Part shown: piece by piece, positions 16,522 to 63,443 of the stretch
How positions within the stretch are numbered: position 1 is the stretch's first letter
How the letters are laid out: each line of letters begins with the position of its first letter
Assembly: GCA_002104945.1 (NCBI GenBank)
Contig: MCFH01000026.1
Location: 434,001 to 498,000 of the forward strand
Length of the DNA stretch: 64,000 nt
Direction: 5' to 3'
Source: Piromyces finnis finn
Lineage: Eukaryota > Fungi > Neocallimastigomycota
Notes under the pieces: generated by a model
Told to the model about the DNA's origin: nothing
Seen by the model: only the letters and a program-made list of their open reading frames with translations
Databases searched by the model: none
Program-made: the position numbers and the translations under genes

Positions 16522-17106
16522 GTAATGATGGCAATAGTGAAGATAATAATTCTAATTTAGATAGTAATTTAGTTAATAATAGTAATAGTTTTAGTAATCG
16601 GGTGAATATTAATATGTGCAATAAAATATTTAAATTGGAAGAAGTTTTAACAATATCAATTCCAATCCAGGGGAATGGAAAGAACTTTGCAAGTGTCAGA
16701 TTCCATCGGGCATTTACGAAGAAATACCATTCTTGACGGTAACAGTGGAACTTTTAACCAAAATCCAATATTCAAAAGGTTTGAAGCAACATCCATGAGC
16801 GTCAATGCTGAAGAAACAGAAAGACAGGCTAGGAGGGCCAGCGTAACCAATGGAGATCATAATTTTGTTCCATGACAAAATTTTGATCTTTAACTCGGTA
16901 TGTCCCATTGGAAGTCAACTACAATTATTGTAAACTTTCTTACTTTAATTAAAATGACTCGAATACATCATACCCAATTTTTATTCATTTCATTTTTATT
17001 TATTTAAACCTATTTTTTTTTTATTATTATTTTTTGTAGCATGTATTATAATTTTAATTAAATTAATAATAAAGTTTAAAAAGATTTGATGCCGTTAAAA
17101 AAAAAA
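16522..17106 (+). mobile_element. Degenerate 5'-truncated LINE 3' fragment (same family as 21.7-30.9 kb)
   Basis: Matches the end of the LINE ORF (FEATSMSVNAEETERQARRASVTNGDHNFVP) and the 3' UTR, with internal deletions; ends ...gatttgatgccgtt(A)10. Confidence 0.92.
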
Positions 17107-19125: not shown

Positions 19126-20817
19126 ATGATGTTTAAACAACTTTTATCCTTTGCTTTCTTTGCTGGTGCTGCTTTCAGTAGAAATGCCACTTTCAAGTTA
19201 ATTTCCTTTGGCTCAAAGGCTCAACTTCAAATTGTTGATGGAAATATTTATGATTTATCTTTATTAAATGATGATATTTTATACGGTACTACTGTTAGTG
19301 ATGCTCCAGAAGGTTCCTTCAAATATTATTACATTATTGATGGTAAAAAGGAAAGTTTTAAACGTACTTTTAAAAAAGGTGATACCTCTACTCACAATGA
19401 ATTCTTTGGTAGAAAGGATACCCTAAAGGAACTTAAAACTTTTAAACGTCCAGAAAATTTCAAAACTTGGGATAGAACTATTGGAAAAACCGAACTTTTT
19501 GATGATTCTTACATTCCAACCATCCATATTACCGGTAGTAAGGCTAAAAAATTCTTTAAAAATCCAGTCAAATATGAAGATTCCAAATTAGAAAAGGTCA
19601 CTTTCTACCTTAGAGATTCTGTTGAAACTTTTACCAATGTTTCTTCTTCTGCAAAGAACTACGAATTCAGTAAATTCCAAATTAAAATGAAATTAGGTAA
19701 AAATTCTCAAGGTACTAAAGGTTTCAATGGTAGATACGTCTTAAAATTACGTAATGGTGGTGAAGATCCAATTAATCTTCGTCAAGTAATTTACGGTAAT
19801 ATTATTCGTGAACTTGGTATGCCAGCCCTTCATTCTGTAATGTGCCGTGTTTACTATGAAAAGAAACCAGCTGGTTTCTATACTTTACAAGAAACTGTTC
19901 CAACCGAATCTTTTGTTAACACTGAATTCTACGGTAACCCAAAAACTGGTGTTGCTAGTCCTCCAAAGAAGATTGGTTACATCTTTGATGGTACTACTGG
20001 TTCTGACTTTGAATACAAGAAAAATGATGAAGACTACTACTCTGTCTTTGATATGACTTCTGATGATCAAAGTTATGATCGTTTAATCGCTTTCACCAAA
20101 GCTATCAAGAATCTTAACCCATTCAATGAAAAGGAATTAGCTTCCTTTGAAAAAAAATGGTTCGATATTGATACTTTCCACAAGGCTATGGCTATGGAAT
20201 ATTTAACTGGTGATTGGGATGGTTATTGGTACACAACTGCTAATTTTGCTATCTACGATGATCCAAACGAATCTACCAAAAATACCTACAAATTCTACTT
20301 TATTACTCAAGATCATGATGAAACTTTTGGTGTCGGTTTAGATGATGATATTAATACCGTTGGTCACAAATTCCCAGAAATTTCTTACACTACTATGCTT
20401 AACCGTACCTGGCATATTGCTGAAGATGATGCCAAGTACCGTACTCTTGTTGATAAATTCATTGCTTCCACTCCAAGTCTTCATAAGCGTTTCCAAGATA
20501 CTCTTTTCGCTATTGTTAAGAACATCTTTAACCCAGTTGCTTTCAGAGATGTTGTTGATTCTTACTATGATCGTTATGAACCAGAAGTTAAATGGGATTA
20601 CTCTTTCACTCGTCCATACGTCGTTAAGGATCAATACCCAGATTATGGTTACAAGGATTTCGTTGACGGTTTTGAAGGTGAAATTGAAGGTGTTGATTGG
20701 AGTCTTTACGAATGGGTTAAACTTAGATCTGAAGCTATTAAAAAGGAATTCTGTATTACCTGGGAAGGTGATGCTAACCCACCAAAAGAAACTTGTGTTC
20801 CAAAGGTTCAATTTTAA
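19126..20817 (+). CDS. cotH: Secreted CotH-family atypical protein kinase (563 aa, intronless, no dockerin)
   Basis: Signal peptide MMFKQLLSFAFFAGAAFS. CotH-type motifs: KFQIKMKL, LKLRNGGEDPINLR, GFYTLQE, FDIDTFHKAMAMEYLTGDWDGYW, QDHDETFG, LYEWVKLR. Confidence 0.88.
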   Translation: MMFKQLLSFAFFAGAAFSRNATFKLISFGSKAQLQIVDGNIYDLSLLNDDILYGTTVSDAPEGSFKYYYIIDGKKESFKRTFKKGDTSTHNEFFGRKDTLKELKTFKRPENFKTWDRTIGKTELFDDSYIPTIHITGSKAKKFFKNPVKYEDSKLEKVTFYLRDSVETFTNVSSSAKNYEFSKFQIKMKLGKNSQGTKGFNGRYVLKLRNGGEDPINLRQVIYGNIIRELGMPALHSVMCRVYYEKKPAGFYTLQETVPTESFVNTEFYGNPKTGVASPPKKIGYIFDGTTGSDFEYKKNDEDYYSVFDMTSDDQSYDRLIAFTKAIKNLNPFNEKELASFEKKWFDIDTFHKAMAMEYLTGDWDGYWYTTANFAIYDDPNESTKNTYKFYFITQDHDETFGVGLDDDINTVGHKFPEISYTTMLNRTWHIAEDDAKYRTLVDKFIASTPSLHKRFQDTLFAIVKNIFNPVAFRDVVDSYYDRYEPEVKWDYSFTRPYVVKDQYPDYGYKDFVDGFEGEIEGVDWSLYEWVKLRSEAIKKEFCITWEGDANPPKETCVPKVQF

Positions 20818-21539: not shown

Positions 21540-21542
<3 letters not shown>

Positions 21543-21595
<53 letters not shown>

Positions 21596-21655
21596 ATTCA
21601 TCAGGGTTGGTTTCTTTATTTTATTATTAGTAATTTGAAAAATTATATTTTTATC
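21543..21655 (-). mobile_element. Short poly(A)-tailed retroposed stub of a different sequence family, abutting the 5' end of LINE copy A
   Basis: T50 at 21543-21592; the minus strand reads ...aataaagaaaccaaccctgatgaatc(A)50, with AATAAA ~20 nt before the tail. No TSD found. Confidence 0.4.
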
Positions 21656-21671
21656 ATGATGGTAAAAAGTT

Positions 21672-23591
21672 ATGATATATTTAAAGAGTGTGAAGATCTC
21701 GGAGTCAGTTTAGGTGACACTCGATGCTGTGGTGGACTTTTTGCAGATGATATAGTTATTTGTGCTCCAACAAGAGGATGCTTAAAAAAGATGCTTAGAA
21801 GAGTTAATGAATGGGCCTTGTATAATGAAATGGAATTTGGTATCCAGAAGTGTTCAACGATGGTGATTCGTCCTGAATCAATAGAAAATCAGAACAAGAG
21901 AGATCCAACATTTTACTTAGCAGGACAACCCATTCCAACTACTGATTGTTATACTTATCTTGGTGTTCCATTTGATAAGAATCTGTCCCTTAAACCAGTT
22001 ATTAAAACTCTTAATAACAAGGTTTTGAAAGGGCTTTTTTCAGTCAGTAAATTCTTAAGAAATCCTAATATTCCTATTCCCTTCAAAAAGCTAGTACTTA
22101 ACTCACAAGTGATTAGCAGAGTTTCATACTTTGCACCATTACTTGGATCCAACAAAGCCAGGTCTAGAATTGCACAGAAGCATGTTAACAAAGGAATACG
22201 ATGGGTTGCCGGAGTTCATAAAGCTGTATCGTTTATATCTTTATACTCTATTTCAAAAGATTTGAATATTCCTCCATTGTCAGCCAAATGTGCATTAGCT
22301 CAGGTTAGATGTTTTAACAAATGGAAAAACTCGAATTGTATTATCTCATACCTTGTCAATTACATTCCTAAATTTAGAAAATACACGTGGTGCAAATCAA
22401 GTAGGACACTTGATAAAAAACTAAAGAAACATGGAGATGTTAAAGCAGTTAAAAACTTTTATTGGAAAGATCTCAAAGGGAATTCAATCAAAGCGCAATA
22501 TTATGATGATAATAAGTTTATTGATACTAAAGATTTTATTAAATTATGTTATGAGTACCCAGAGTTTGCCTATGGCTTCTACTGGCTATTGAAAGCAAGA
22601 AGCGGATACAAGTTGGATGCTAGAGTTGCCAAAGCTGCCAAATTTGTTGATCCAGTTTGTCCTAACTACTGTCCATGTTGCAAGTGTGGAGATCAAAGTA
22701 TTAAACATTGGTTATTAGATTGTCCAACATTTAGAGATATCCGTATTAAACATTATGATTCCATAGTCCAGCTATTAAATTTTTTCAGTCAACGTAATTC
22801 AAATAGTCCTATCAATAATAATGAAATTGATAATATCAGTAGAGATAGTAATAATATTAATAGTAATAGTAACAATAGTAATAATAACAATAGTAATAGT
22901 AACAATAGTAATAATAACAATAGTAGTAATAGAAATAATAATATTAGTAATGATAGCAATAGTGAAGATAATAATTCTAATTTAGATAGTAATTTAGTTA
23001 ATGATAGTAATAGTTCTAATAATCCGGTGAACATTAATGTGTATGATTATTCTAGTGTGTGCAGTAAAATATTTAAATTCCTTCTTGGGGGAAGAAGTTT
23101 TAACAATATCAATTACAATTCAAGGGAATGGAAAGAACTTTGTAAGCGTCAGATTCAATCTGGTACTAATGAAGGAACACCATTCTTGACGGTAACCGCG
23201 GAACTTCTAACCAAAATCATGCCTTTTGCTATTGGCCAGCAATGGTCAATGTTCAAAAGGTTTGAAGCAACATCCAAGAGCGTCAATGCTGAAGAAACAG
23301 TAAGACAGGCCAGGAGGGCCAGCGCAACCAATGGAGATCATAATTTTGTCCCATGATAAAATTTTGATCTTTGGCTCGGTGTCCCATTGGAAGTCAAATA
23401 CAATTATTATACTTTAGTATGATAGTGGCTTTCTTACTTTAATTAAAATTACTAGAATACATTATACCCAATTTTTATTCATTTGTGTTTATTTAAACAT
23501 ATTTTTTTTATTTTTATTTTATTTTAATTTTTATATTTCATGTATTATAATTTTAATTAAATTAATAATAAAGTTTATAATATTTGATGCC

Positions 23592-23627
<36 letters not shown>
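21672..23627 (+). mobile_element. 5'-truncated LINE copy A (C-terminal half of RT, CCHC knuckle, poly-Asn tract, 3' UTR, poly(A))
   Basis: Near-identity to 27061 onward begins at atgatatatttaaagag. Contains GLFADD and CPCCKCGDQSIKHWLLDC; ORF stop at 23356; ends tttgatgccgtt(A)~33. Confidence 0.95.
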
Positions 23628-23628
<1 letters not shown>

Positions 23629-24230
23629 ATTTTATCCATCGAATTTAAGTATTTGATGAATAAGTTGAATGTTTGATACTCAGGTAAGTTTGTATAGTAT
23701 TTAATTAGAAGAGTAATACATTTTGTTGCTGTATTTTTTTCTTTTATTCATGTATTCATGTAGTACTACTCTTCTCTTGTAAGAATCCAATGTAGTCAAC
23801 TTTAGCATTTGCATTGTATTTTTATATTCATGTAGCTATTGTTGTATTGTTTCTTGTAAGAGACTGATTCACTCTACATCATGTAAAAATACTATTCACA
23901 AGCTTTCTGGTGTCGACATTCTTGATTCAAATTTTTTACCAATTTAAATATTTAATGAAAAGTAAAGTCAAACAAGTTTAGTGTCAAAAGCGAATCGAAT
24001 TTACTAACAACAAACCAAAACTAGAATTTTTAAAGAAAATTTACAACTAGAATTCAAAAAAAAAAAAAAAAAAAAAAAGAAACTTTAAACAAAGCATCGT
24101 AACAATTTTTGTACTATCCAGTACTTTTAAGAAGAGAGAGAGAGACAGATTTTTTTCCATATACGTTATATTTATAATTTTTATTAGTATTTATTTTATA
24201 TTCAATATTTTTTAATTAGAATTAATTATC

Positions 24231-27200
24231 ATGTCAGTCCTTTATATTAAAGATAAGAATTATATCAGACGTGGTACCCGGTCTTATGGTATCCCCTTAG
24301 ATGATATTCGCTCCTTCTTTATCCGTGGTATTCGATCATGGTCAGTAAATATGCTATGGGAAAAACTCGAGGTTATTCTAGAAGATAAATTTAATTCAGT
24401 TATTAGTGTTAAATATTTTCAGACTTTCAATGATCACTTTTTCTTAGTCAAGGTTCATGGTTCATCAAAAGATTGTATTAAAATCTTACACATGTTAAAG
24501 AAGAAACTTTCAGTTACCTCAATTTCCTTTTCAGCTCGTAGTAGAAGGAATCACAAATACACTTTTTCCACTCTCAAACGTAAAATTTTAGTTTCTAATA
24601 AACATCAACATTCTATTCAACAATCATTTCAACAATCATTTCAACAATCAGTTCAACAATCTCATCAACAATCCGATCTTCAACAAGATCTTCAACAAGT
24701 TTTCCATCATGAAAATATTCCAGATCTACAGCAAACACAATTTCAATCTCAACATTCAACAATTAATTCTAATAGTTCTATCAACTCTGATAACAGTTCA
24801 ATAGTTGATAGTTCTTCAGTTTCACAGCCATCTAGTAATAGTTCTACTTATTCCTCTGATGCATCATCCATTAATAACGATGACTTTAATAATAATAATA
24901 ATAGCAACGATTCTTCCTCATCCAACAAGCCTGATAACTTTTCTTTTTGTCTTAGTTGGAACACCAATGGGTGGAATCACGAAAAGAGAGATAGTATTAG
25001 CTATTTCACAGCTATTTTCAAACCATTATTTTTATGTTTCCAAGAAACTGGTAATGGTTCTGGATCGAATACAGATTATCCTTGTCGTGTTACTTTGCGA
25101 AACTATAGACACTTTTTCAAGAAAGCTGACGAATCAGTTCCGGGAATGAGAGGTTTATATTTAGGTTTTCACAATTCATGTCAAGCCTCACTTGAAAACT
25201 TCTCTGGAAAGTATATTATTTCTATTTATACTTTTAGTCTCTGGAATAGATTCAAATGCTCGATTGGAAATGTTTATATGCCTCATAGTCATCACAACAT
25301 CTATGTTGATCATGCAAAGTTAGAAGTTCGCTTGTGGTTACAAACTCATTCATCCCATCCATCGATTCTTGTTGGTGATTTTAATATGTCTAAAGTAAAA
25401 TTATCCAACTGGTTATCAACTAATGGATTAGGAGATTGGGAAATTCTTCCGCTTAGAGGGTCTACTATCTCTTGGACTCGAGGTGATCAATCTTCCGACA
25501 TTGACCATGCTCTTATCAATTCGAAGATGAAAGATCTTATTCACTCAGGATCATTTATAAATAATTTTTATCCTGTATCAGACCATAAGCCACTTCTTAT
25601 TAATGGTAAAATTATTCCTATGGAAGATTTTTCTAATGACTTTAATGTTCCTAAGAAAATTCTGAAATGGAATAGATTAAAATGTATTGAGGAAAAGGAA
25701 TCTATTCTCAGTCATAATAAATTCCAAATACTTTCAGCAAAATTCAACGATCCTAATGTTTCTACAGATGAACTTTCCAAAGAGTTTACTTCAACTGCTT
25801 TTTCAATTGCAGACGAGCTCAGTATTACCTCAGCAAATAATGTTATAAAGTCTTCATTTCATATTTCACAACAAATTTTTAATCTCCAAAAAATCAAAAT
25901 GAAGTTGTATAAGAGATTTAAAAAAGAAAGAATTTATGATATAGATGAATTTATTAAAAGAATTAAAATCTACCGTAAGCTCATTGATTACATCCACAAA
26001 AGATGTAATGAATTTAGGAAACAAGAATATCTTCATTGGATTAAAACAGGATGTGAGTATATGAAGAGTCATAATCCTAAGAAGGCCTGGAAATGGATCA
26101 AGAAAACTGCAAAAATTGGAAAAGATTCTTTCTTTATTGCTCAACCAATTAAAAATAAAAATGGAGAATTAGTTGTTGCTACGGAAGAACAACTAGATGT
26201 GTGGCATGATCATTTCGAAAACCTTGCATCAGATCCAAGTGGTGTAAGTCTTGATCTAGAGCATTGGTATGAAGAACCAACGAATAAACGTTTTTCACTT
26301 CCTATGCTTGATGAATGGGATATCAACCAAGATATTAGTATTGATGAAGTCAAGTCAGCTATCCTCTCTACTCCAAATTATAAAGCATCAGGTCCGGATG
26401 GTATTCCAATTGAATTTTACAAAGCATTAATTCCATCAAGTAATGATTCTAATAATGCTACAGATAATAATTCTTCCGGTAATACTACTTCAGATAATGA
26501 CGCTCATGGTTTAAATTTTATTCTTAAATTATTCAACCGTATCTGGGATGGAGACTTTCCCAACTCATGGAATGAATCCAGTATTGTTTCTATTCCTAAG
26601 AAGGGAGATTTGACAGATTGTGATAACTATCGAGGTATATCACTTATCAATAATGGTATTAAGTTGATTTCCAAAATTGTCACCACTAGAATCTCAGAAT
26701 ATGGTTTAAAGAATAATTTCATTAGACCTGAACAATTTGGTTTTCGATAAAAGGAAGAAAGTATCAGTCTTTTCATTTCAATCCAAGAAATATGCCGTAG
26801 ACGTCAATTAGATAATAAAGAGACATATTTGGCCTTTTTAGATCTCAGGAAAGCATACGATTCAGTCCCAATCGGTAATATTCTCCATAAATTAGATTGT
26901 TTAGGAATCCGAGGTAAGAGTCTACAATTTATCAAAAATTTATATTTAACATCTAAGGCTAATGTCAAATTAGATGGACAATTCTCGAAATCTTTTGATG
27001 TGAAGAAAGGAGTCCGTCAAGGTTGCCCTCTTTCTCCTATTCTCTTTAATCTCTTTATTAATGATATATTTAAAGAGTGCGAAGATCTAGGAGTCAGTTT
27101 AGGTGACACTCGATGCTGTGGTGGACTTTTTGCAGATGATATAGTTATTTGTGCTCCAACAAGAGGATGCTTAAAAAAGATGCTAAGAAGAGTTAATGAA

Positions 27201-28108
27201 TGGGCCTTGTATAATGAAATGGAATTTGGTATCCAGAAATGTTCAACGATGGTGATTCGTCCTGAATCAATAGAAAATCAGAACAAGAGAGATCCAACAT
27301 TTTACTTAGCAGGACAACCCATTCCAACTACTGATTGTTATACTTATCTTGGTGTTCCATTTGATAAGAATCTGTCCCTTAAACCAGTTATTAAAACTCT
27401 TAATAACAAGGTTTTGAAAGGACTTTTTTCAGTCAGTAAATTCTTAAGAAATCCTAATATTCCTATTCCCTTCAAAAAGCTAGTACTTAATTCACAAGTG
27501 ATTAGCAGAGTTTCATACTTTGCACCATTACTTGGGTCCAATAAAGCTAGGTCTAGGATTGCTCAGAAGCATGTTAACAGAGGAATACGATGGGTTGCCG
27601 GAGTTCATAAAGCTGTATCGTTTATATCTTTATACTCTATCTCAAAAGATTTGAATATTCCTCCATTGTCAGCCAAATGTGCATTAGCTCAGGTTAGATG
27701 TTTTAACAAATGGAAAAACTCGAATTGTATTATCTCACACCTTGTCAATTACATTCCTAAATTTAGAAAATATACATGGTTCAAATCAAGTAGGACACTT
27801 GATAAAAAATTAAAGAAGCATGGAGATGTTAAAACAGTTAAAAACTTTTATTGAAAGATCTCAAAGGAAATTCAATCAAAGCACAATATTATGATGATAA
27901 TAAATTTATTGAAACTAAAGATTTTATTAAATTATGTTATGAATACCCAGAGTTTGCCTATGGCTTCTACTGGCTATTGAAAGCAAGAAGCGGATACAAG
28001 TTGGATGCTAGAGTTGCCAAAGCTGCTAAATTTGTTGATCCAGTTTGTCCTAACTACTGTCCATGTTGCAAGTGTGGTGTTCAAAGTATTAAACATTGGT
28101 TATTAGAT
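24231..28108 (+). pseudogene. Disrupted LINE ORF, copy B: N-terminal extension + APE + RT
   Basis: Nonsense TAA at 26748-26750 (AAA in the duplicate) and a 1-bp deletion at ~27852 (tattgaaag vs tattggaaag) split it into ORFs 24231-26750 and 26829-27854. Confidence 0.9.
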
Positions 28109-30778
28109 CCTAAGAAGGCCTGGAAATGGATCAAGAAAACTGCAAAAATAGGAAAAGATTCTTTCTTTATTGCTCAACCAATTAAAAATAAAAATGGAGA
28201 ATTAGTTGTTGCTACAGAAGAACAACTTGAAGTGTGGCATGATCATTTCGAAAACCTTGCATCAGATCCAAGTGGTGTAAGTCTTGATTTGGAGCATTGG
28301 TATGAAGAACCAACGAATAAACGTTTTTCACTTCCTATGCTTGATGAGTGGGATATCAACCAAGATATTAGTATTGATGAAGTCAAGTCAGCTATCCTCA
28401 CTACTCCAAATTATAAAGCATCAGGTCCGGATGGTATTCCAATTGAATTTTACAAAGCATTAGTTCCATCAAGTAATGATTCTAATAATGCTTCAGATAA
28501 TAATTCTTCTGGTAATACTACTTCAGATAATGATGCTCATGGTTTAAATTTTATTCTTAAATTATTCAACCGTATTTGGGATGGAGATTTCCCCAACTCA
28601 TGGAATGAATCCAGTATTGTTTCTATTCCTAAGAAGGGAGATTTGACAGATTGTGATAACTATCGAGGTATATCACTTATCAATAATGGTATTAAGTTGA
28701 TTTCCAAAATTGTCACCACTAGAATCCCAGAATATGGTCTAAAGAATAATTTCATTAGACCTGAACAATTTGGTTTTCGAAAAAAGGAAGAAAGTATCAG
28801 TCTTTTCATTTCAATCCAAGAAATATGCCGTAGACGTCAATTAGATAATAAAGAGACATATTTGGCCTTTTTAGATCTCAGGAAAGCATACGATTCAGTC
28901 CCAATCGGTAATATTCTCCATAAATTAGATTGTTTAGGAATCCGAGGTAAGAGTCTACAATTTATCAAAAATTTATATTTAACATCTAAGGCTAATGTCA
29001 AATTAGATGGACAATTCTCGAAATCTTTTGATGTGAAGAAAGGAGTCCGTCAAGGTTGCCCTCTTTCTCCTATTCTCTTTAATTTCTTTATTAATGATAT
29101 ATTTAGAGAGTGCGAAGATCTAGGAGTCAGTTTAGGTGACACTCGATGCTGTGGTGGACTTTTTGCAGATGATATAGTTATTTGTGCTCCAACAAGAGGA
29201 TGCTTAAAAAAGATGCTTAGAAGAATTAATGAATGGGCATTGTATAATGAAATGGAATTTGGTATCCAGAAATGTTCAACGATGGTGATTCGTCCTGAAT
29301 CAATAGAAAATCAGAACAAGAGAGATCCAACATTTTACTTAGCAGGACAACCCATTCCAACTACTGATTGTTATACTTATCTTGGTGTTCCATTTGATAA
29401 GAATCTGTCCCTTAAACCAGTAATTAAAGCTCTTAATAACAAGGTTTTGAAAGGACTTTTTTCAGTCAGTAAATTCTTAAGAAATCCTAATATTCCTATT
29501 CCCTTCAAAAAGCTAGTACTTAACTCACAAGTGATTAGCAGAGTTTCATACTTTGCACCATTACTTGGGTCCAATAAAGCTAGGTCTAGGATTGCTCAGA
29601 AGCATGTTAACAGAGGAATACGATGGGTTGCCGGAGTTCATAAAGCTGTATCGTTTATATCTTTATACTCTATCTCAAAAGATTTGAATATTCCTCCATT
29701 GTCAGCCAAATGTGCATTAGCTCAGGTTAGATGTTTTAACAAATGGAAAAACTCGAATTGTATTATCTCACACCTTGTCAATTACATTCCTAAATTTAGA
29801 AAATATACATGGTGCAAATCAAGTAGGACACTTGATAAAAAACTAAAGAAACATGGAGATGTTAAAGCAATTAAAAACTTTTATTGGAAAGATCTCAAAG
29901 GAAATTCAATCAAAGCACAATATTATGATGATAATAAATTTATTGAAACTAAAGATTTTATTAAATTATGTTATGAATACCCAGAGTTTGCCTATGGCTT
30001 CTACTGGCTATTGAAAGCAAGAAGCGGATACAAGTTGGATGCTAGAGTTGCCAAAGCTGCTAAATTTGTTGATCCAGTTTGTCCTAACTACTGTCCATGT
30101 TGCAAGTGTGGTGTTCAAAGTATTAAACATTGGTTATTAGATTGTCCAACATTTAGAGATATCCGTATTAAACATTATGATTCCATAGTTCAGCTACTAA
30201 ATTTTTTCAGTCAACGTAATTCCAATAGTCCTATCAATAATAATGAAAATGTTAATATCAGTAGAGATAGTAATAATATTAATAGTAATAGTAACAATAG
30301 TAATTGTAACAATAGTAATTGTAACAATAGTAATAATAACAATAGTAGTAATAGAAATAATAATATTAGTAATGATAGCAATAGTGATGATAATAATTCT
30401 AATTTAGATAGTAATTTAGTTAATGATAGTAATAGTTCTAATAATCCGGTGAATATTAATGTGTATGATTATTCTAGTGTGTGCAGTAAAATATTTAAAT
30501 TCCTTCTTGGGGGAAGAAGTTTTAACAATATTAATTACAATTCAAGGGAATGGAAAGAACTTTGTAAGTGTCAGATTCAATCTGGTACTAATGAAGGAAC
30601 ACCATTCTTGACGGTAACCGCGGAACTTCTAACCAAAATCATGCCTTTTGCTATTGGCCAGCAATGGTCAACATTCAAAGGGTTTGAAGCAATAGCCAAG
30701 AACGTCAATGTGGAAGAAACAATAAGACAGGCCAGGATGGCCAGCGCAACCAATGGAGATTATAATTTTGTCCCATAA
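27851..30778 (+). CDS. Chimeric 975-aa LINE ORF: C-terminal CCHC segment of copy B fused in frame to an intact linker-RT-CCHC of copy C
   Basis: Junction HWLLD|PKKAWKW at 28108/28109; uninterrupted RT domain with FADD. Confidence 0.85.
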   Translation: MKDLKGNSIKAQYYDDNKFIETKDFIKLCYEYPEFAYGFYWLLKARSGYKLDARVAKAAKFVDPVCPNYCPCCKCGVQSIKHWLLDPKKAWKWIKKTAKIGKDSFFIAQPIKNKNGELVVATEEQLEVWHDHFENLASDPSGVSLDLEHWYEEPTNKRFSLPMLDEWDINQDISIDEVKSAILTTPNYKASGPDGIPIEFYKALVPSSNDSNNASDNNSSGNTTSDNDAHGLNFILKLFNRIWDGDFPNSWNESSIVSIPKKGDLTDCDNYRGISLINNGIKLISKIVTTRIPEYGLKNNFIRPEQFGFRKKEESISLFISIQEICRRRQLDNKETYLAFLDLRKAYDSVPIGNILHKLDCLGIRGKSLQFIKNLYLTSKANVKLDGQFSKSFDVKKGVRQGCPLSPILFNFFINDIFRECEDLGVSLGDTRCCGGLFADDIVICAPTRGCLKKMLRRINEWALYNEMEFGIQKCSTMVIRPESIENQNKRDPTFYLAGQPIPTTDCYTYLGVPFDKNLSLKPVIKALNNKVLKGLFSVSKFLRNPNIPIPFKKLVLNSQVISRVSYFAPLLGSNKARSRIAQKHVNRGIRWVAGVHKAVSFISLYSISKDLNIPPLSAKCALAQVRCFNKWKNSNCIISHLVNYIPKFRKYTWCKSSRTLDKKLKKHGDVKAIKNFYWKDLKGNSIKAQYYDDNKFIETKDFIKLCYEYPEFAYGFYWLLKARSGYKLDARVAKAAKFVDPVCPNYCPCCKCGVQSIKHWLLDCPTFRDIRIKHYDSIVQLLNFFSQRNSNSPINNNENVNISRDSNNINSNSNNSNCNNSNCNNSNNNNSSNRNNNISNDSNSDDNNSNLDSNLVNDSNSSNNPVNINVYDYSSVCSKIFKFLLGGRSFNNINYNSREWKELCKCQIQSGTNEGTPFLTVTAELLTKIMPFAIGQQWSTFKGFEAIAKNVNVEETIRQARMASATNGDYNFVP

Positions 30779-31362
30779 CATTGGAAGTCAAATATAATTA
30801 TTGTATTTTAGTATCATAGTAGCTCTCATTCTTTAATTGAAATGACTAGAGTACACATAATACCCAATTTTTATTCATTTGTGTTTATTTAAACCTATTA
30901 TTGTTTTTTGTAGCAAGGAAGATAGTAAAAAAAATATTATTATAATAAAAAATGAACAATATCTTTTCTAGTTAATACGTCAGCTAATATATTTTTCAAT
31001 GCTAATGTTTTCTTGTTGCATAATAAATTATTATTATATTATGAAATAAAGAACTTTACTACTCTGTAAAAAGTGATATTATAATTTAATAAATTAATAA
31101 AAAACCCCAATTTGAATATAATTGAATATATTCTTTTAATAATTTTTTTTTTTTAAAAAAAAAAAGTCTTTATTTTATTAATGAATCTTTTTAAATGATA
31201 TAATTCGTATTATAAATTAGAATATTTTTAATATATAAATATAATAGAATATTTTTAAATTTACATTTTTATTTATGACATTATCTATCTGTAAATATAA
31301 TTTTTAAATTAAACGTTTACTAATGTTTTTTCTTTTAAAACTTTTTCCCTATATAATCTTGA

Positions 31363-59168: not shown

Positions 59169-61130
59169 ATGAATATAATACATTCATTCTATATTTTAAC
59201 TCTTGGATTATTATTATTTATCCATCAAGCCTATTCAAAAATTCAAACTATTTATGAAATAAATGTTATTCCAGTAAATAAGGAAATTTTTGAAGCTGGT
59301 GTCAATAACCAAATAAGAATAGCTTTATGGAGTAAAACAAGAAATTATCCGGTTCCAATGGAAGAAATTGAACCAAATGAAAGTTCTCTTATTGAAGTTG
59401 TTATATTTTCTAATGATTTAAGATCCTTTGCTCACTTCCATATGGAAGAATTCCCACATTACAATGACGAAAATAATTTACCAACAACTGCAAATTATTT
59501 TGATATTGATTATATTTTCCCAATTGCTGGTGACTATACTATTTCAATTAAATGCAAACCCTACAAAAAAAGTATAAGAATTAATCAAACTATTCACGTT
59601 GAAGGAAAGAAGGAAAATAAAATGAACCTTGATAATGCCTTATTACCAGTTAATCCAAATAACGTTAAAGTAATTTATTTCAAACCAATTCAATTAGAAA
59701 ATATTAAGTCCATCTATCGTTTACCTATCATTCCACATACTTTAACCATTCCAGAAAAGGAATTAAAGAGTGAAGTTGAAAAGGCTACCGGTCCAATATA
59801 CGGTGCAAAAATTAACATTAAGAATACCTTAAAAATTGGCTATTGTAGTAATGTTCTTATAGAATTTTTTAGAGTCGAATTAGAAAATGGTGAAATTAAG
59901 GAAGTTCCGGTCACCGATCTCTTCCAATACAATAATGTACCAATTAAAGCGATCGTTGGTAACGTAGAAAACCCAGATTTCGATATTGTTCAAGGTAATA
60001 TTCTTAATTCTCTTAGTGATCGTTTCCCAAGTTGTGGTTCTAAAATCAATCCACCAAAGGAAATGGTCTTTGGTCCAAACTTTGGTTTTTCTATTCCATT
60101 CCGTAGTAATGGTATTTACCAAATCGTTTTTGAAATTGCCCATTCCTTCAATGATAATACCTATCTTTTAACTCCAAATGTTGTTGTTACCGTTACCGAT
60201 GATGAAGGAAATGCTAATTATGCTGCCGAGGATTATGTTGATGATGACACTAATTACGATCAATTTGTTCAAGATGTTGTCGACAAACAAATTACAGTTC
60301 CAGAAATTCCAGTAGACGATGATTCTTCTTCCGGCGGTAGTGTTCCAATTAATGGTGATAATTCTAATGAAGCCAAGACTACCACTACCACTACTACCAC
60401 CACTACTACTACTACCACCACTACCACCACTACTACCACTACTACTACCACTACAACAGAAGCTGCTGAAACACCAGCTACTTTAGAAGAAAACCCAGAT
60501 GATTCCAAAACAGATGAACAACCAGACGATTCCAAATCATTTGAAAACCCAGATGATTCCAAGACGGATGAACAACCAGACGATTCCAAATCATTTGAAA
60601 ACCCAGATGATTCCAAGACGGATGAACAACCAGAATCTGATGAAAAACCAACAGAAGGTGAACATGAATATATATCAACAGCACCAAATTATGAAGAAGA
60701 CGAACCAATTCCAGAAACTTCACATGGAAAGATTATTATTATTGGTGTTGCCGGTATTATAACGATATCAGGTTTAATGTAAGTAAAAAAAAAAAAAAAA
60801 GCCTGAAAAAAATTTTTTTTTATTAATTATATTTTTACTTTTCATAACGCTATTTTTTTTAATTTATTTATTAATGCATCAAATTTATTATTACCCCTAA
60901 CAAATCACACTTTCTGTAGGTTCTATAAACAAAAAACTAATTTCAGAAACGCTGAAACTATTCCATCAGAATACAAACAAATTAATCCAGATAATGATGA
61001 TGATGATGAAGAATTTATGTTAAATACTGAAGAAAAAGAAATGCTTGAAAAGAGATCCAATGTTTCATTGGACATTGAAAGTGATGACATATTAGATAAC
61101 GAAGACTATACCTTAATGGATGATGAATAA
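59169..61130 (+). CDS. Type I membrane / cell-surface protein (~606 aa): two Ig-like modules, poly-Thr stalk, acidic 18-aa repeats, TM helix, acidic tail; exons 59169-60778, 60920-61130
   Basis: Signal peptide; ~26 consecutive Thr; ENPDDSKTDEQPDDSKSF repeats; TM IIIIGVAGIITISGLMFY spans a phase-2 intron; 1821 nt total. Confidence 0.82.
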
Positions 61131-62257: not shown

Positions 62258-62318
62258 AACCACCATTGGGATTTACTATTCTGATTGATGGGAGAAATAC
62301 ACTTGGAAGTTAAAAAAA
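62258..62318 (+). mobile_element. ~60-bp 3'-end fragment of the SINE family, inverted relative to the full copy
   Basis: aaccaccattgggatttactattctgattgatgggagaaatacacttggaagtt(A)7 vs SINE aaccaccattggagctaactctgatcgatgggagaaatgcactcggaagtt(A)39. Confidence 0.85.
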
Positions 62319-62533
62319 TAGGAAGAGTTTAATACGCATTATTCAAATAGGTTAATTTAGTTTAGAAATTTCTTTCTTTTTTTTTTTTTTTTAAAAAAAT
62401 GTAGGATCCCTTTCATTCTTTAATAAAGGTTAGATTACTATAAAATACATGTGATAAAATCACATTATATTCACATTATATGTCATCTTATTGGTGGAAA
62501 TTTAATTATTTTATGGATTTGATCTTTTAATTG

Positions 62534-62535
<2 letters not shown>

Positions 62536-62577
<42 letters not shown>

Positions 62578-63106
62578 TTCCGAGTGCATTTCTCCCATCG
62601 ATCAGAGTTAGCTCCAATGGTGGTTCTTAGAGAAACGTTGGCTCATTCCTATTGCTAGGTGGTTGTGACCCTCCTGGTCTGTCATACTGTTTCTTCAGCT
62701 TCGACGCTCACTTAATCCATGTACATTAGATGCATGTCGTTGTACGATATTTCACAACTACAATGCTAAGCCTCTTATAGTCAATTTGATCACGTGTCAA
62801 CCGCCCCCTAATGTTTACACTTAAATTGATTAAGGAATATTATGTGTTTTTGGCATAGCCTAAGTCACCACTTATTAAGTTCTAATTTGGAATGTACCAT
62901 GTACACTAGACCCTCTCAGGCCGGCTAGACGAGTGTTATTATCATAGTAGTAAATTAGAAAGTTCATTTATACTTACCTGAATATCATAACCCAACCCAT
63001 GGCAAACCCAGTGGGAAAATCCACAGGCACTGACATCTGCGGGGTCGAACCAGAAGCCTTATGTATGCTAAGGAAACGCCTTAACAACCAGGATAAAAAC
63101 TGGAAC
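62536..63106 (-). mobile_element. Full-length tRNA-derived SINE (571 bp including A39 tail) with 15-bp TSD
   Basis: TSD gatcttttaattgaa (62521-62535) / gaccttttaattgaa (63107-63121); T39 at 62536-62574; tRNA-like head with B box; LINE-related segment 62661-62710; much higher GC than the flanks. Confidence 0.88.
63031..63102 (-). pseudogene. tRNA-Ala(AGC)-derived head of the SINE (not a functional tRNA)
   Basis: 72 nt with canonical spacing: D-arm cct-ggttgtta-agg, anticodon loop TTAGCAT (63071-63065), variable loop aggct, T-arm tctgg-TTCGACC-ccgca (B box GGTTCGACCCC). Acceptor and anticodon stems do not pair well. Confidence 0.8.
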
Positions 63107-63443
63107 GACCTTTTAATTGAAAGTCACCAAATTTTTCGAAAAAAATTTTTTTTTTTTTTATTTTTTTGCTTTTTACTGTATACCACCACCTCTCAAAAAA
63201 CCTTTTTTTTTTAAACAATAAAAAAGTATATAAAGATCAACTTTTTTTTTCATATTTTATAATTTTGTCAAAGTAATTATACCGCCTTTTTTTTATTTCT
63301 TTTTTTTTTTTATAGTCAAATTTTCTTTTTTTTTTTTTTTATTTAAATATTAAAAAAATAAATTAATAAATTTTTTAAAATTTATTTTTTTTTAAATATA
63401 AAAATATAAAAAAAAAATTTTTTTTCTTTTTCTTTTTTATTAT

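Follow-up and report, generated by a model that had tools for sequence, protein, structure and literature searches.

A young SINE-like retroposon family in the fungus Piromyces finnis shares 3′ sequence with an L1-like LINE

The minus strand of the 64-kb stretch of DNA analysed here (the window), from the anaerobic gut fungus Piromyces finnis, carries a 535-nt sequence with a long poly(A) tail. This sequence probably represents a family of short, non-coding and non-autonomous retroposons composed of a tRNA-Ala-type head, a body, a 3′ domain derived from a LINE and a poly(A) tail. The SINE-like family is real and young, and an L1-like element is a plausible partner. Its host belongs to a phylum, the Neocallimastigomycota, in which no such family seems to have been described.

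The element and its insertion are defined by the following features, given in window coordinates.
63109–62536, minus strand: the SINE element, a 535-nt body followed by A39.
62575–63109, minus strand: the 535-nt SINE body, from direct reading and from 534/535 identity to a second copy (L003:8030-8564).
63110–63121, minus strand: the 5′ target-site duplication TTCAATTAAAAG, a perfect repeat of 62524–62535.
62524–62535, minus strand: the 3′ target-site duplication TTCAATTAAAAG, from direct reading.
62536–62574, minus strand: the pure A39 tail, from direct reading.
62258–62318, plus strand: an older, severely 5′-truncated copy of the family, comprising the last ~54 nt and A7, 81–84% identical.

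The second full-length copy, L003:8030-8564, lies on another P. finnis contig of the same assembly (GCA_002104945.1). Both full-length copies start with the nucleotides GTCGTTCCAG. Since the second copy begins at this same nucleotide, the 5′ end of the window element can be placed at 63109, and with the start fixed there the duplication flanking it is a perfect 12 bp. An earlier sequence-only reading of this DNA had described a 15-bp duplication with one mismatch; the three additional positions belong to the element at one end and to the flank at the other. The A39 tail that it reported is present at 62574–62536. The G+C content of the body is 42%, compared with ~20% for the genome and mostly 14–36% for the window, and a G+C-rich island of this kind in AT-rich genomes can mislead gene callers. 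Neither AATAAA nor ATTAAA occurs anywhere in the SINE, including the region upstream of the A tail, whereas AATAAA(G/A) is found ~15–30 nt before the tail in every LINE copy and relative examined. This difference fits an A tail that would be templated in the SINE and not added after Pol II cleavage.

The two full-length copies are 99.8% identical, differing at one of 535 positions. On the other contig, the copy ends in GGAAGTT followed by a pure A22, and a perfect 13-bp duplication of its own, TTCTTTATCAAAA, lies on either side of it. The older copy is situated 220 nt from the window element on the opposite strand and also ends in GGAAGTT, followed by A7. It had been noticed before as a second 3′ end nearby, and its severe 5′ truncation is expected from target-primed reverse transcription. 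Two full copies on different contigs and a truncated one exclude a single-copy sequence. The element is short, dispersed and non-coding: it has no Pfam match and no stop-free frame of more than 57 aa, and a peptide from one of its frames retrieved no homologue when used as bait. Duplications of 12 and 13 bp, tails of A39 and A22 and the 5′-truncated copy are hallmarks of LINE-type insertion. The anatomy of the copies shows that the family inserts by a LINE-type mechanism and has been active very recently. The near-identity of the full copies, their pure tails and their perfect duplications also bear out the earlier proposal of a young family and a recent insertion. A young SINE family implies that the L1-like LINE was active recently as well, and insertion polymorphisms of the family would be usable as strain markers. 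One full copy was present in 139.9 kb of non-overlapping P. finnis DNA (loci L001–L008) that had been picked irrespective of the element. A density of ~1 per 100–150 kb would correspond to probably hundreds of copies in the genome, with a very wide error.

The 5′ region of the element contains a tRNA-like head with the following features.
63030–63109, minus strand: the head, ~80 nt, of which nt 27–69 (63083–63041) resemble tRNA-Ala(AGC) in an ungapped comparison.
63041–63051, minus strand: B box GGTTCGACCCC, element nt 59–69, an exact match to the consensus.
63065–63071, minus strand: the anticodon-loop-like heptamer TTAGCAT (anticodon AGC), from direct reading.
63095–63099, minus strand: a T5 run at element nt 11–15, where the A box should lie, in both full-length copies.

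The heptamer (63071–63065) and the exact B box (63051–63041) are both as the sequence-only reading had given them. Apart from the B box, the 64-kb window contains no match to GGTTCGANNCC (0.05 are expected by chance); 13 nt separate TTAGCAT from the first G of the box, which is the canonical tRNA spacing (positions 39–51). For a comparison at the sequence level we used the human tRNA-Ala(AGC) printed in bioRxiv 10.64898/2026.08.12.744379, so that the comparator is a human sequence and not a P. finnis gene. SINE nt 27–69 matched it at 30 of 43 positions without gaps, from the 3′ strand of the D stem through the T loop. None of 3,000 shuffles reached this value (shuffle maximum 25). The first 29 nt of the match, which leave out the generic T arm, agreed at 20 positions (p ~0.0003), and the tRNA-Pro control from the same paper scored 22/43 in the same register. 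By manual count, 10 of the 13 mismatches to tRNA-Ala are transitions.

The proposed tRNA-Ala origin of the head is supported by the sequence of the mid-head and not by the fold. The acceptor and anticodon stems have lost their pairing, the 5′ third contains extra bases and the best A-box match in the head has three mismatches. ARAGORN reported no tRNA in the window at its default or 90% thresholds; a call made at the 80% threshold was rejected as an artefact that borrows flanking DNA. Rfam searches at E values up to 10, run with 4 kb, with 601 nt and with the 91-nt head, gave no match to tRNA, 5S, 7SL or snRNA. We read the head as a tRNA-Ala-type sequence in decay, which would have kept its B box and lost its cloverleaf. 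The family would most likely be transcribed by Pol III from an internal promoter in the head. The T5 run at nt 11–15 and a T4 run at nt 91–94 could both act as Pol III terminators. In the 175 kb of P. finnis loci that were fetched (139.9 kb non-overlapping), ARAGORN found no usable tRNA gene. Its sole call there, a 95-nt 'tRNA-His(atg)' at L002:18811-18905, is probably spurious.

Downstream of the head, SINE nt ~85–400 have no significant similarity to the rest of the window, the LINE 5′ UTR included, in agreement with the unique body of ~320 nt described before. One feature of the body counts against a SINE.
62925–62977, minus strand: an AT-rich piece that resembles an intron, GTAAGT ... CTAAT ... 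TAG, flanked by blocks of higher G+C content, from direct reading.

This piece carries a perfect GTAAGT donor. Separately, TGATAyTCAGGTAAGT is common to SINE nt 124–139 (62971–62986) and to the LINE 5′ UTR at 23674–23689 (15 of 16 positions, E = 1.2). The match is a perfect 5′ splice-site consensus, and the resemblance to the LINE is probably due to chance.

The intron-like piece is one of several observations that would suit a different origin, which we regard as rather unlikely. The family could be a LINE-dependent retroposon and not a true SINE, that is, a Pol II non-coding RNA with a dead tRNA fragment and a 3′ end that mimics the LINE. A T5 run at nt 11–15 together with a poor A box, the failure of the tRNA finders ARAGORN and Rfam on the head, and the presence of the element in assemblies of RNA runs, which maybe stem from poly(A)-selected libraries, would all be compatible with such a transcript. 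It is harder to reconcile with an exact B box at a tRNA-like distance from the fixed 5′ end of both full copies, and with a SINE that lacks the AATAAA or ATTAAA found before the tail of the LINEs. Moreover, retroposition would leave an upstream Pol II promoter behind, and yet the family continued to amplify. A SINE that would be transcribed by Pol III is the favoured reading.

A LINE that combines an APE endonuclease domain (PF03372) with a reverse transcriptase domain (PF00078) occurs several times in the window. The solved structure closest to its protein is human L1 ORF2p (E 1e-33), with R2 at 1e-18. Its poly(A) tails range from A10 to A37, which together with the two domains characterizes an L1-like LINE. 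A truncated LINE copy in L006 is flanked by a duplication of 11–13 bp and has an A22 tail, resembling the SINE in both respects. Neither of the two full-length LINE copies examined, one in the window and one in L001, has an intact ORF. The sequences that relate the SINE to this LINE are listed below.
62575–62712, minus strand: the LINE-derived 3′ domain of the SINE, 138 nt, in which a two-hairpin module is followed by an insertion of 39 nt and by a terminal stretch that ends in GGAAGTT.
23275–23399, plus strand: the LINE module homologous with the 3′ domain of the SINE, comprising the ORF end, the stop codon (23354–23356) and the proximal 3′ UTR.
16794–16915, plus strand: the module in a second LINE copy, from alignment to the SINE 3′ domain.
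30697–30795, plus strand: the module in a third LINE copy, internally deleted, from alignment to the SINE 3′ domain.

In blastn comparisons a 53-nt stretch of the SINE was 85% identical to 23278–23330 (E 6e-11), 84% identical to 16796–16840 (E 3e-8) and 75% identical to 30700–30752 in the third LINE copy (E 7e-4). SINE nt 402–451 correspond to the codons with which the LINE ORF ends. These values substantiate two points of the sequence-only reading, namely that the SINE has sequence in common with an L1-like LINE from this genome and that a segment of ~50 nt is homologous to the end of its ORF. The MAFFT alignment extends the relationship. Past the 39-nt SINE insertion, ACCAnTGGAG ... GGAAGTyAAA is collinear with the LINE across the stop codon, and the collinear LINE stretch ends ~40 nt into the 3′ UTR. 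The last ~55 nt of the full copy and the 3′ half of the LINE module, aligned end to end, gave z scores of 3.7–3.8, and the older fragment (62258–62318) aligned end to end with the LINE module at z up to 5.4. The boundaries of these alignments were picked after the MAFFT alignment had been seen, which makes their p-values optimistic. When the SINE tail and the 3′ half of the module were aligned purely locally, significance was not reached (p 0.07–0.1). A LINE origin of the last ~55 nt of the SINE thus has moderate support at the level of sequence, and the 3′ end, which had been taken as distinct, turns out to be collinear with the 3′ half of the module (shuffle z 3.7–5.4). The description of the shared piece as LINE coding sequence is right for the last 26 codons and too narrow overall: the SINE carries the entire module, which also spans the stop codon and ~40 nt of the 3′ UTR.

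The module is present in seven P. finnis LINE copies and in three relatives. All 10 of these extend past it into ~240–470 nt of AT-rich UTR, the longest being that of relative L011; the LINE with the module at 23275–23399, for example, continues to an A37 tail at 23595–23631. LINE subfamilies ending in GGAAGTT(A)n, for which a search had been suggested, were not encountered among the 10 copies and relatives. The conserved terminal sequence of the LINEs is instead TTTGnTGCCnTT(A)n, with TTTGCGCTAAT in L011, and this extreme 3′ end is absent from the SINE. Because the LINEs run on to TTTGnTGCCnTT(A)n and none of them ends in GGAAGTT(A)n, the SINE holds an internal LINE module and not the LINE terminus. 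At the homologous internal site a truncated LINE variant, L006:12727-12736, reads GGAAGTTAAA, which is exactly the end of the SINE. The L1-like LINE is most likely the element that moves the SINE.

Several further observations concern the LINE itself. L006:12669-12960 is the 5′-truncated 3′ end of a diverged LINE subfamily, 77% identical to the UTR of the window LINE. We compared the 3′ UTRs at window positions 23357–23631 and at L009:5262-5500, L010:4947-5180 and L011:5005-5387, the last three from relatives with proteins 53–61% identical. Conserved blocks are CAATTATTATAC (in three of four), ATACATTATACC, AATAAA(G/A) and the terminal TTTGnTGCCnTT (TTTGCGCTAAT in L011). The terminal block, just before the poly(A), represents a second conserved 3′ element of the LINE that is missing from the SINE. 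In the window, LINE copies are nested or adjacent at 21593–30778. A 5′-truncated copy ends in A37 at 23631, and directly after it begins a full-length copy, CATTTTATCC..., whose ORF is broken and which contains an internal duplication of 2,033 bp (27061–27360 repeats at 29094–29393). A run of ~54 T at 21541–21594, directly upstream of the truncated copy, could represent the poly(A) of a retroposon on the minus strand.

A LINE-derived 3′ domain would also be found in an internally deleted LINE that kept both LINE ends, as in RIME/ingi or HAL1. We consider this origin very improbable for the P. finnis family. The 15/16 match of SINE nt 124–139 to the LINE 5′ UTR at 23674–23689 points in its direction, but has an E value of 1.2. 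The first 400 nt of the SINE are otherwise unlike the LINE, including its 5′ UTR, which starts CATTTTAT, and the distal 240-nt UTR of the LINE is missing. We rejected this candidate on the lack of 5′ similarity between SINE and LINE. Accidental similarity, a processed pseudogene formed once and a misassembly all have next to no probability. Nothing except the failure of the tRNA finders speaks for them, and they are refuted by a 99.8% identical copy on another contig with different flanks and its own duplication, with the truncated copy in the window and the LINE similarity of E 6e-11 adding to this. A processed pseudogene was also rejected on its own account, the element being multi-copy and devoid of AATAAA and ATTAAA. 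The data are best described by the tRNA-headed SINE with a LINE-derived 3′ domain.

The first part of this domain can be folded into two hairpins.
62657–62712, minus strand: the two-hairpin module, from alignment and pair counts, scoring 69.5 bits against the module covariance model.
62705–62681, minus strand: hairpin 1.
62679–62667, minus strand: hairpin 2.

The first 56 nt of the module align without gaps with the LINE relatives L009–L011. In this alignment 95.5% of the cells of the proposed pairs are paired, a value that drops to 20–39% if the partners are slid against each other. Of the 12 pairs, three show changes in both partners, and the observed covariation score was reached by only 1 of 500 shuffles. 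Hairpin 1 retains its stem under a variable loop (AAGAAA, ATAACA, ATATAA, ACAATA). At the second pair of hairpin 2, most LINEs have G-C, and L009 and the two SINE copies have A-U, a change that costs the LINE two amino-acid changes. These data support, short of conclusively given a small and related sample, that the two hairpins would be maintained by compensatory changes in the LINE relatives and the SINE. A longer hairpin across the stop codon was unusually stable in two LINEs (z ~−3.1), and the terminal hairpin of the SINE had no unusual stability (z −0.9 to −1.3). Run over 233 kb, the module covariance model recovered its own source sequences and no further carriers.

We tentatively propose, as a possibility that at present falls short of an even chance, that the two small hairpins across the stop of the L1-like LINE, perhaps together with the longer one, are a cis-acting signal, and that the SINE spreads by carrying a copy of it. 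The LINE protein would bind the hairpin signal on leaving the ribosome, and the SINE would present its copy directly before the poly(A). If so, the partnership of SINE and LINE would be of a 'stringent', structure-specific kind, in an L1-type element that has a poly(A) tail and belongs to an early-diverging fungus. The shared module is a concrete, mutable RNA element with natural compensatory changes, present in both LINE and SINE, and could offer a means of testing how an L1-type reverse transcriptase picks its template.

A mobilization cycle in three steps would account for the structure of the family. First, an RNA would start at a fixed nucleotide, most likely transcribed by Pol III from the internal promoter. 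Second, the endonuclease/reverse transcriptase protein of the L1-like LINE would capture this RNA through its poly(A), and probably also through the two-hairpin module. Third, target-primed reverse transcription into AT-rich DNA would generate the duplications of 12–13 bp and sometimes a 5′ truncation, as the anatomy of the copies shows.

Related partnerships are known from animals. The eel UnaSINE1, a tRNA-derived SINE of the SINE2 type, has a 3′ region derived from the LINE UnaL2. The P. finnis family resembles it in its tRNA-like head with a B box, its unique body, its 3′ region copied from a LINE, its target-site duplications, its 5′-truncated copies and its non-coding nature. In contrast to the UnaSINE1/UnaL2 pair, the P. 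finnis partner is L1-like and poly(A)-tailed and the head has no cloverleaf. Its shared piece is not the extreme 3′ end of the LINE. It is a module that spans the LINE stop codon, ~240 nt before the LINE tail, and the SINE has this module immediately ahead of its poly(A). Alu has a 7SL head and is not known to share sequence with L1. Like the primate Alu/L1 system, the P. finnis family combines what appears to be a templated A tail with an L1-type partner, duplications of ~12–15 bp and young, near-identical copies; unlike Alu, it carries a LINE-derived, probably structured module.

SINEs are little documented in fungi, and the described ones that we found are in Ascomycota: MgSINE (472 bp), Foxy, AfuSINE2 and others (PMC5063351). 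AfuSINE2 heads do not fold as cloverleaves, the 3′ end of AfuSINE2-1a is common to the 3′ UTR of a LINE-like element, and the duplications of Ascomycota SINEs are up to 14 bp long (PMC5063351). Compared by description, the P. finnis family is like them in size, in its probable tRNA-related origin, in a head without cloverleaf and in a 3′ region shared with a LINE (PMC5063351), and is unlike them in its host, one of the Neocallimastigomycota, and in its partner, which is L1-like and not of the Tad/I clade. Full-text literature searches turned up no report of SINEs in Neocallimastigomycota or P. finnis, which agrees with the earlier suggestion that the family is probably undescribed.

We also followed the 31-mers of the SINE in sequencing-run assemblies. 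Assemblies of RNA-type runs contained 73–92% of them in organisms A and B (73–83% in B) and 60–75% in organisms C and D, and gut metagenomes contained 25–31%. Scans of metagenome contigs with a 29-mer from the head and with a gapped tail pattern gave 0 matches each. A single-copy gene next to the element (59169–60300) was present, among organisms A–D, only in B. As the sole holder of this gene, B is presumably the organism from which the window derives. The near-identical SINE sequences in organisms A, C and D could result from sharing among close relatives, from an abundant RNA carried over between samples or from recent spread between species.

Two other coding sequences in the window deserve mention. 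Behind its signal-like start, the 537-aa ORF at 59169–60782 has a long Thr run and then PDDSK-type repeats. RNA-run assemblies of organism B contain this ORF in full, and it is not on record as a called protein. A CotH protein is encoded at 19126–20814; its closest named relative, from Piromyces sp. E2, is 84% identical, and named paralogues occur in P. finnis.
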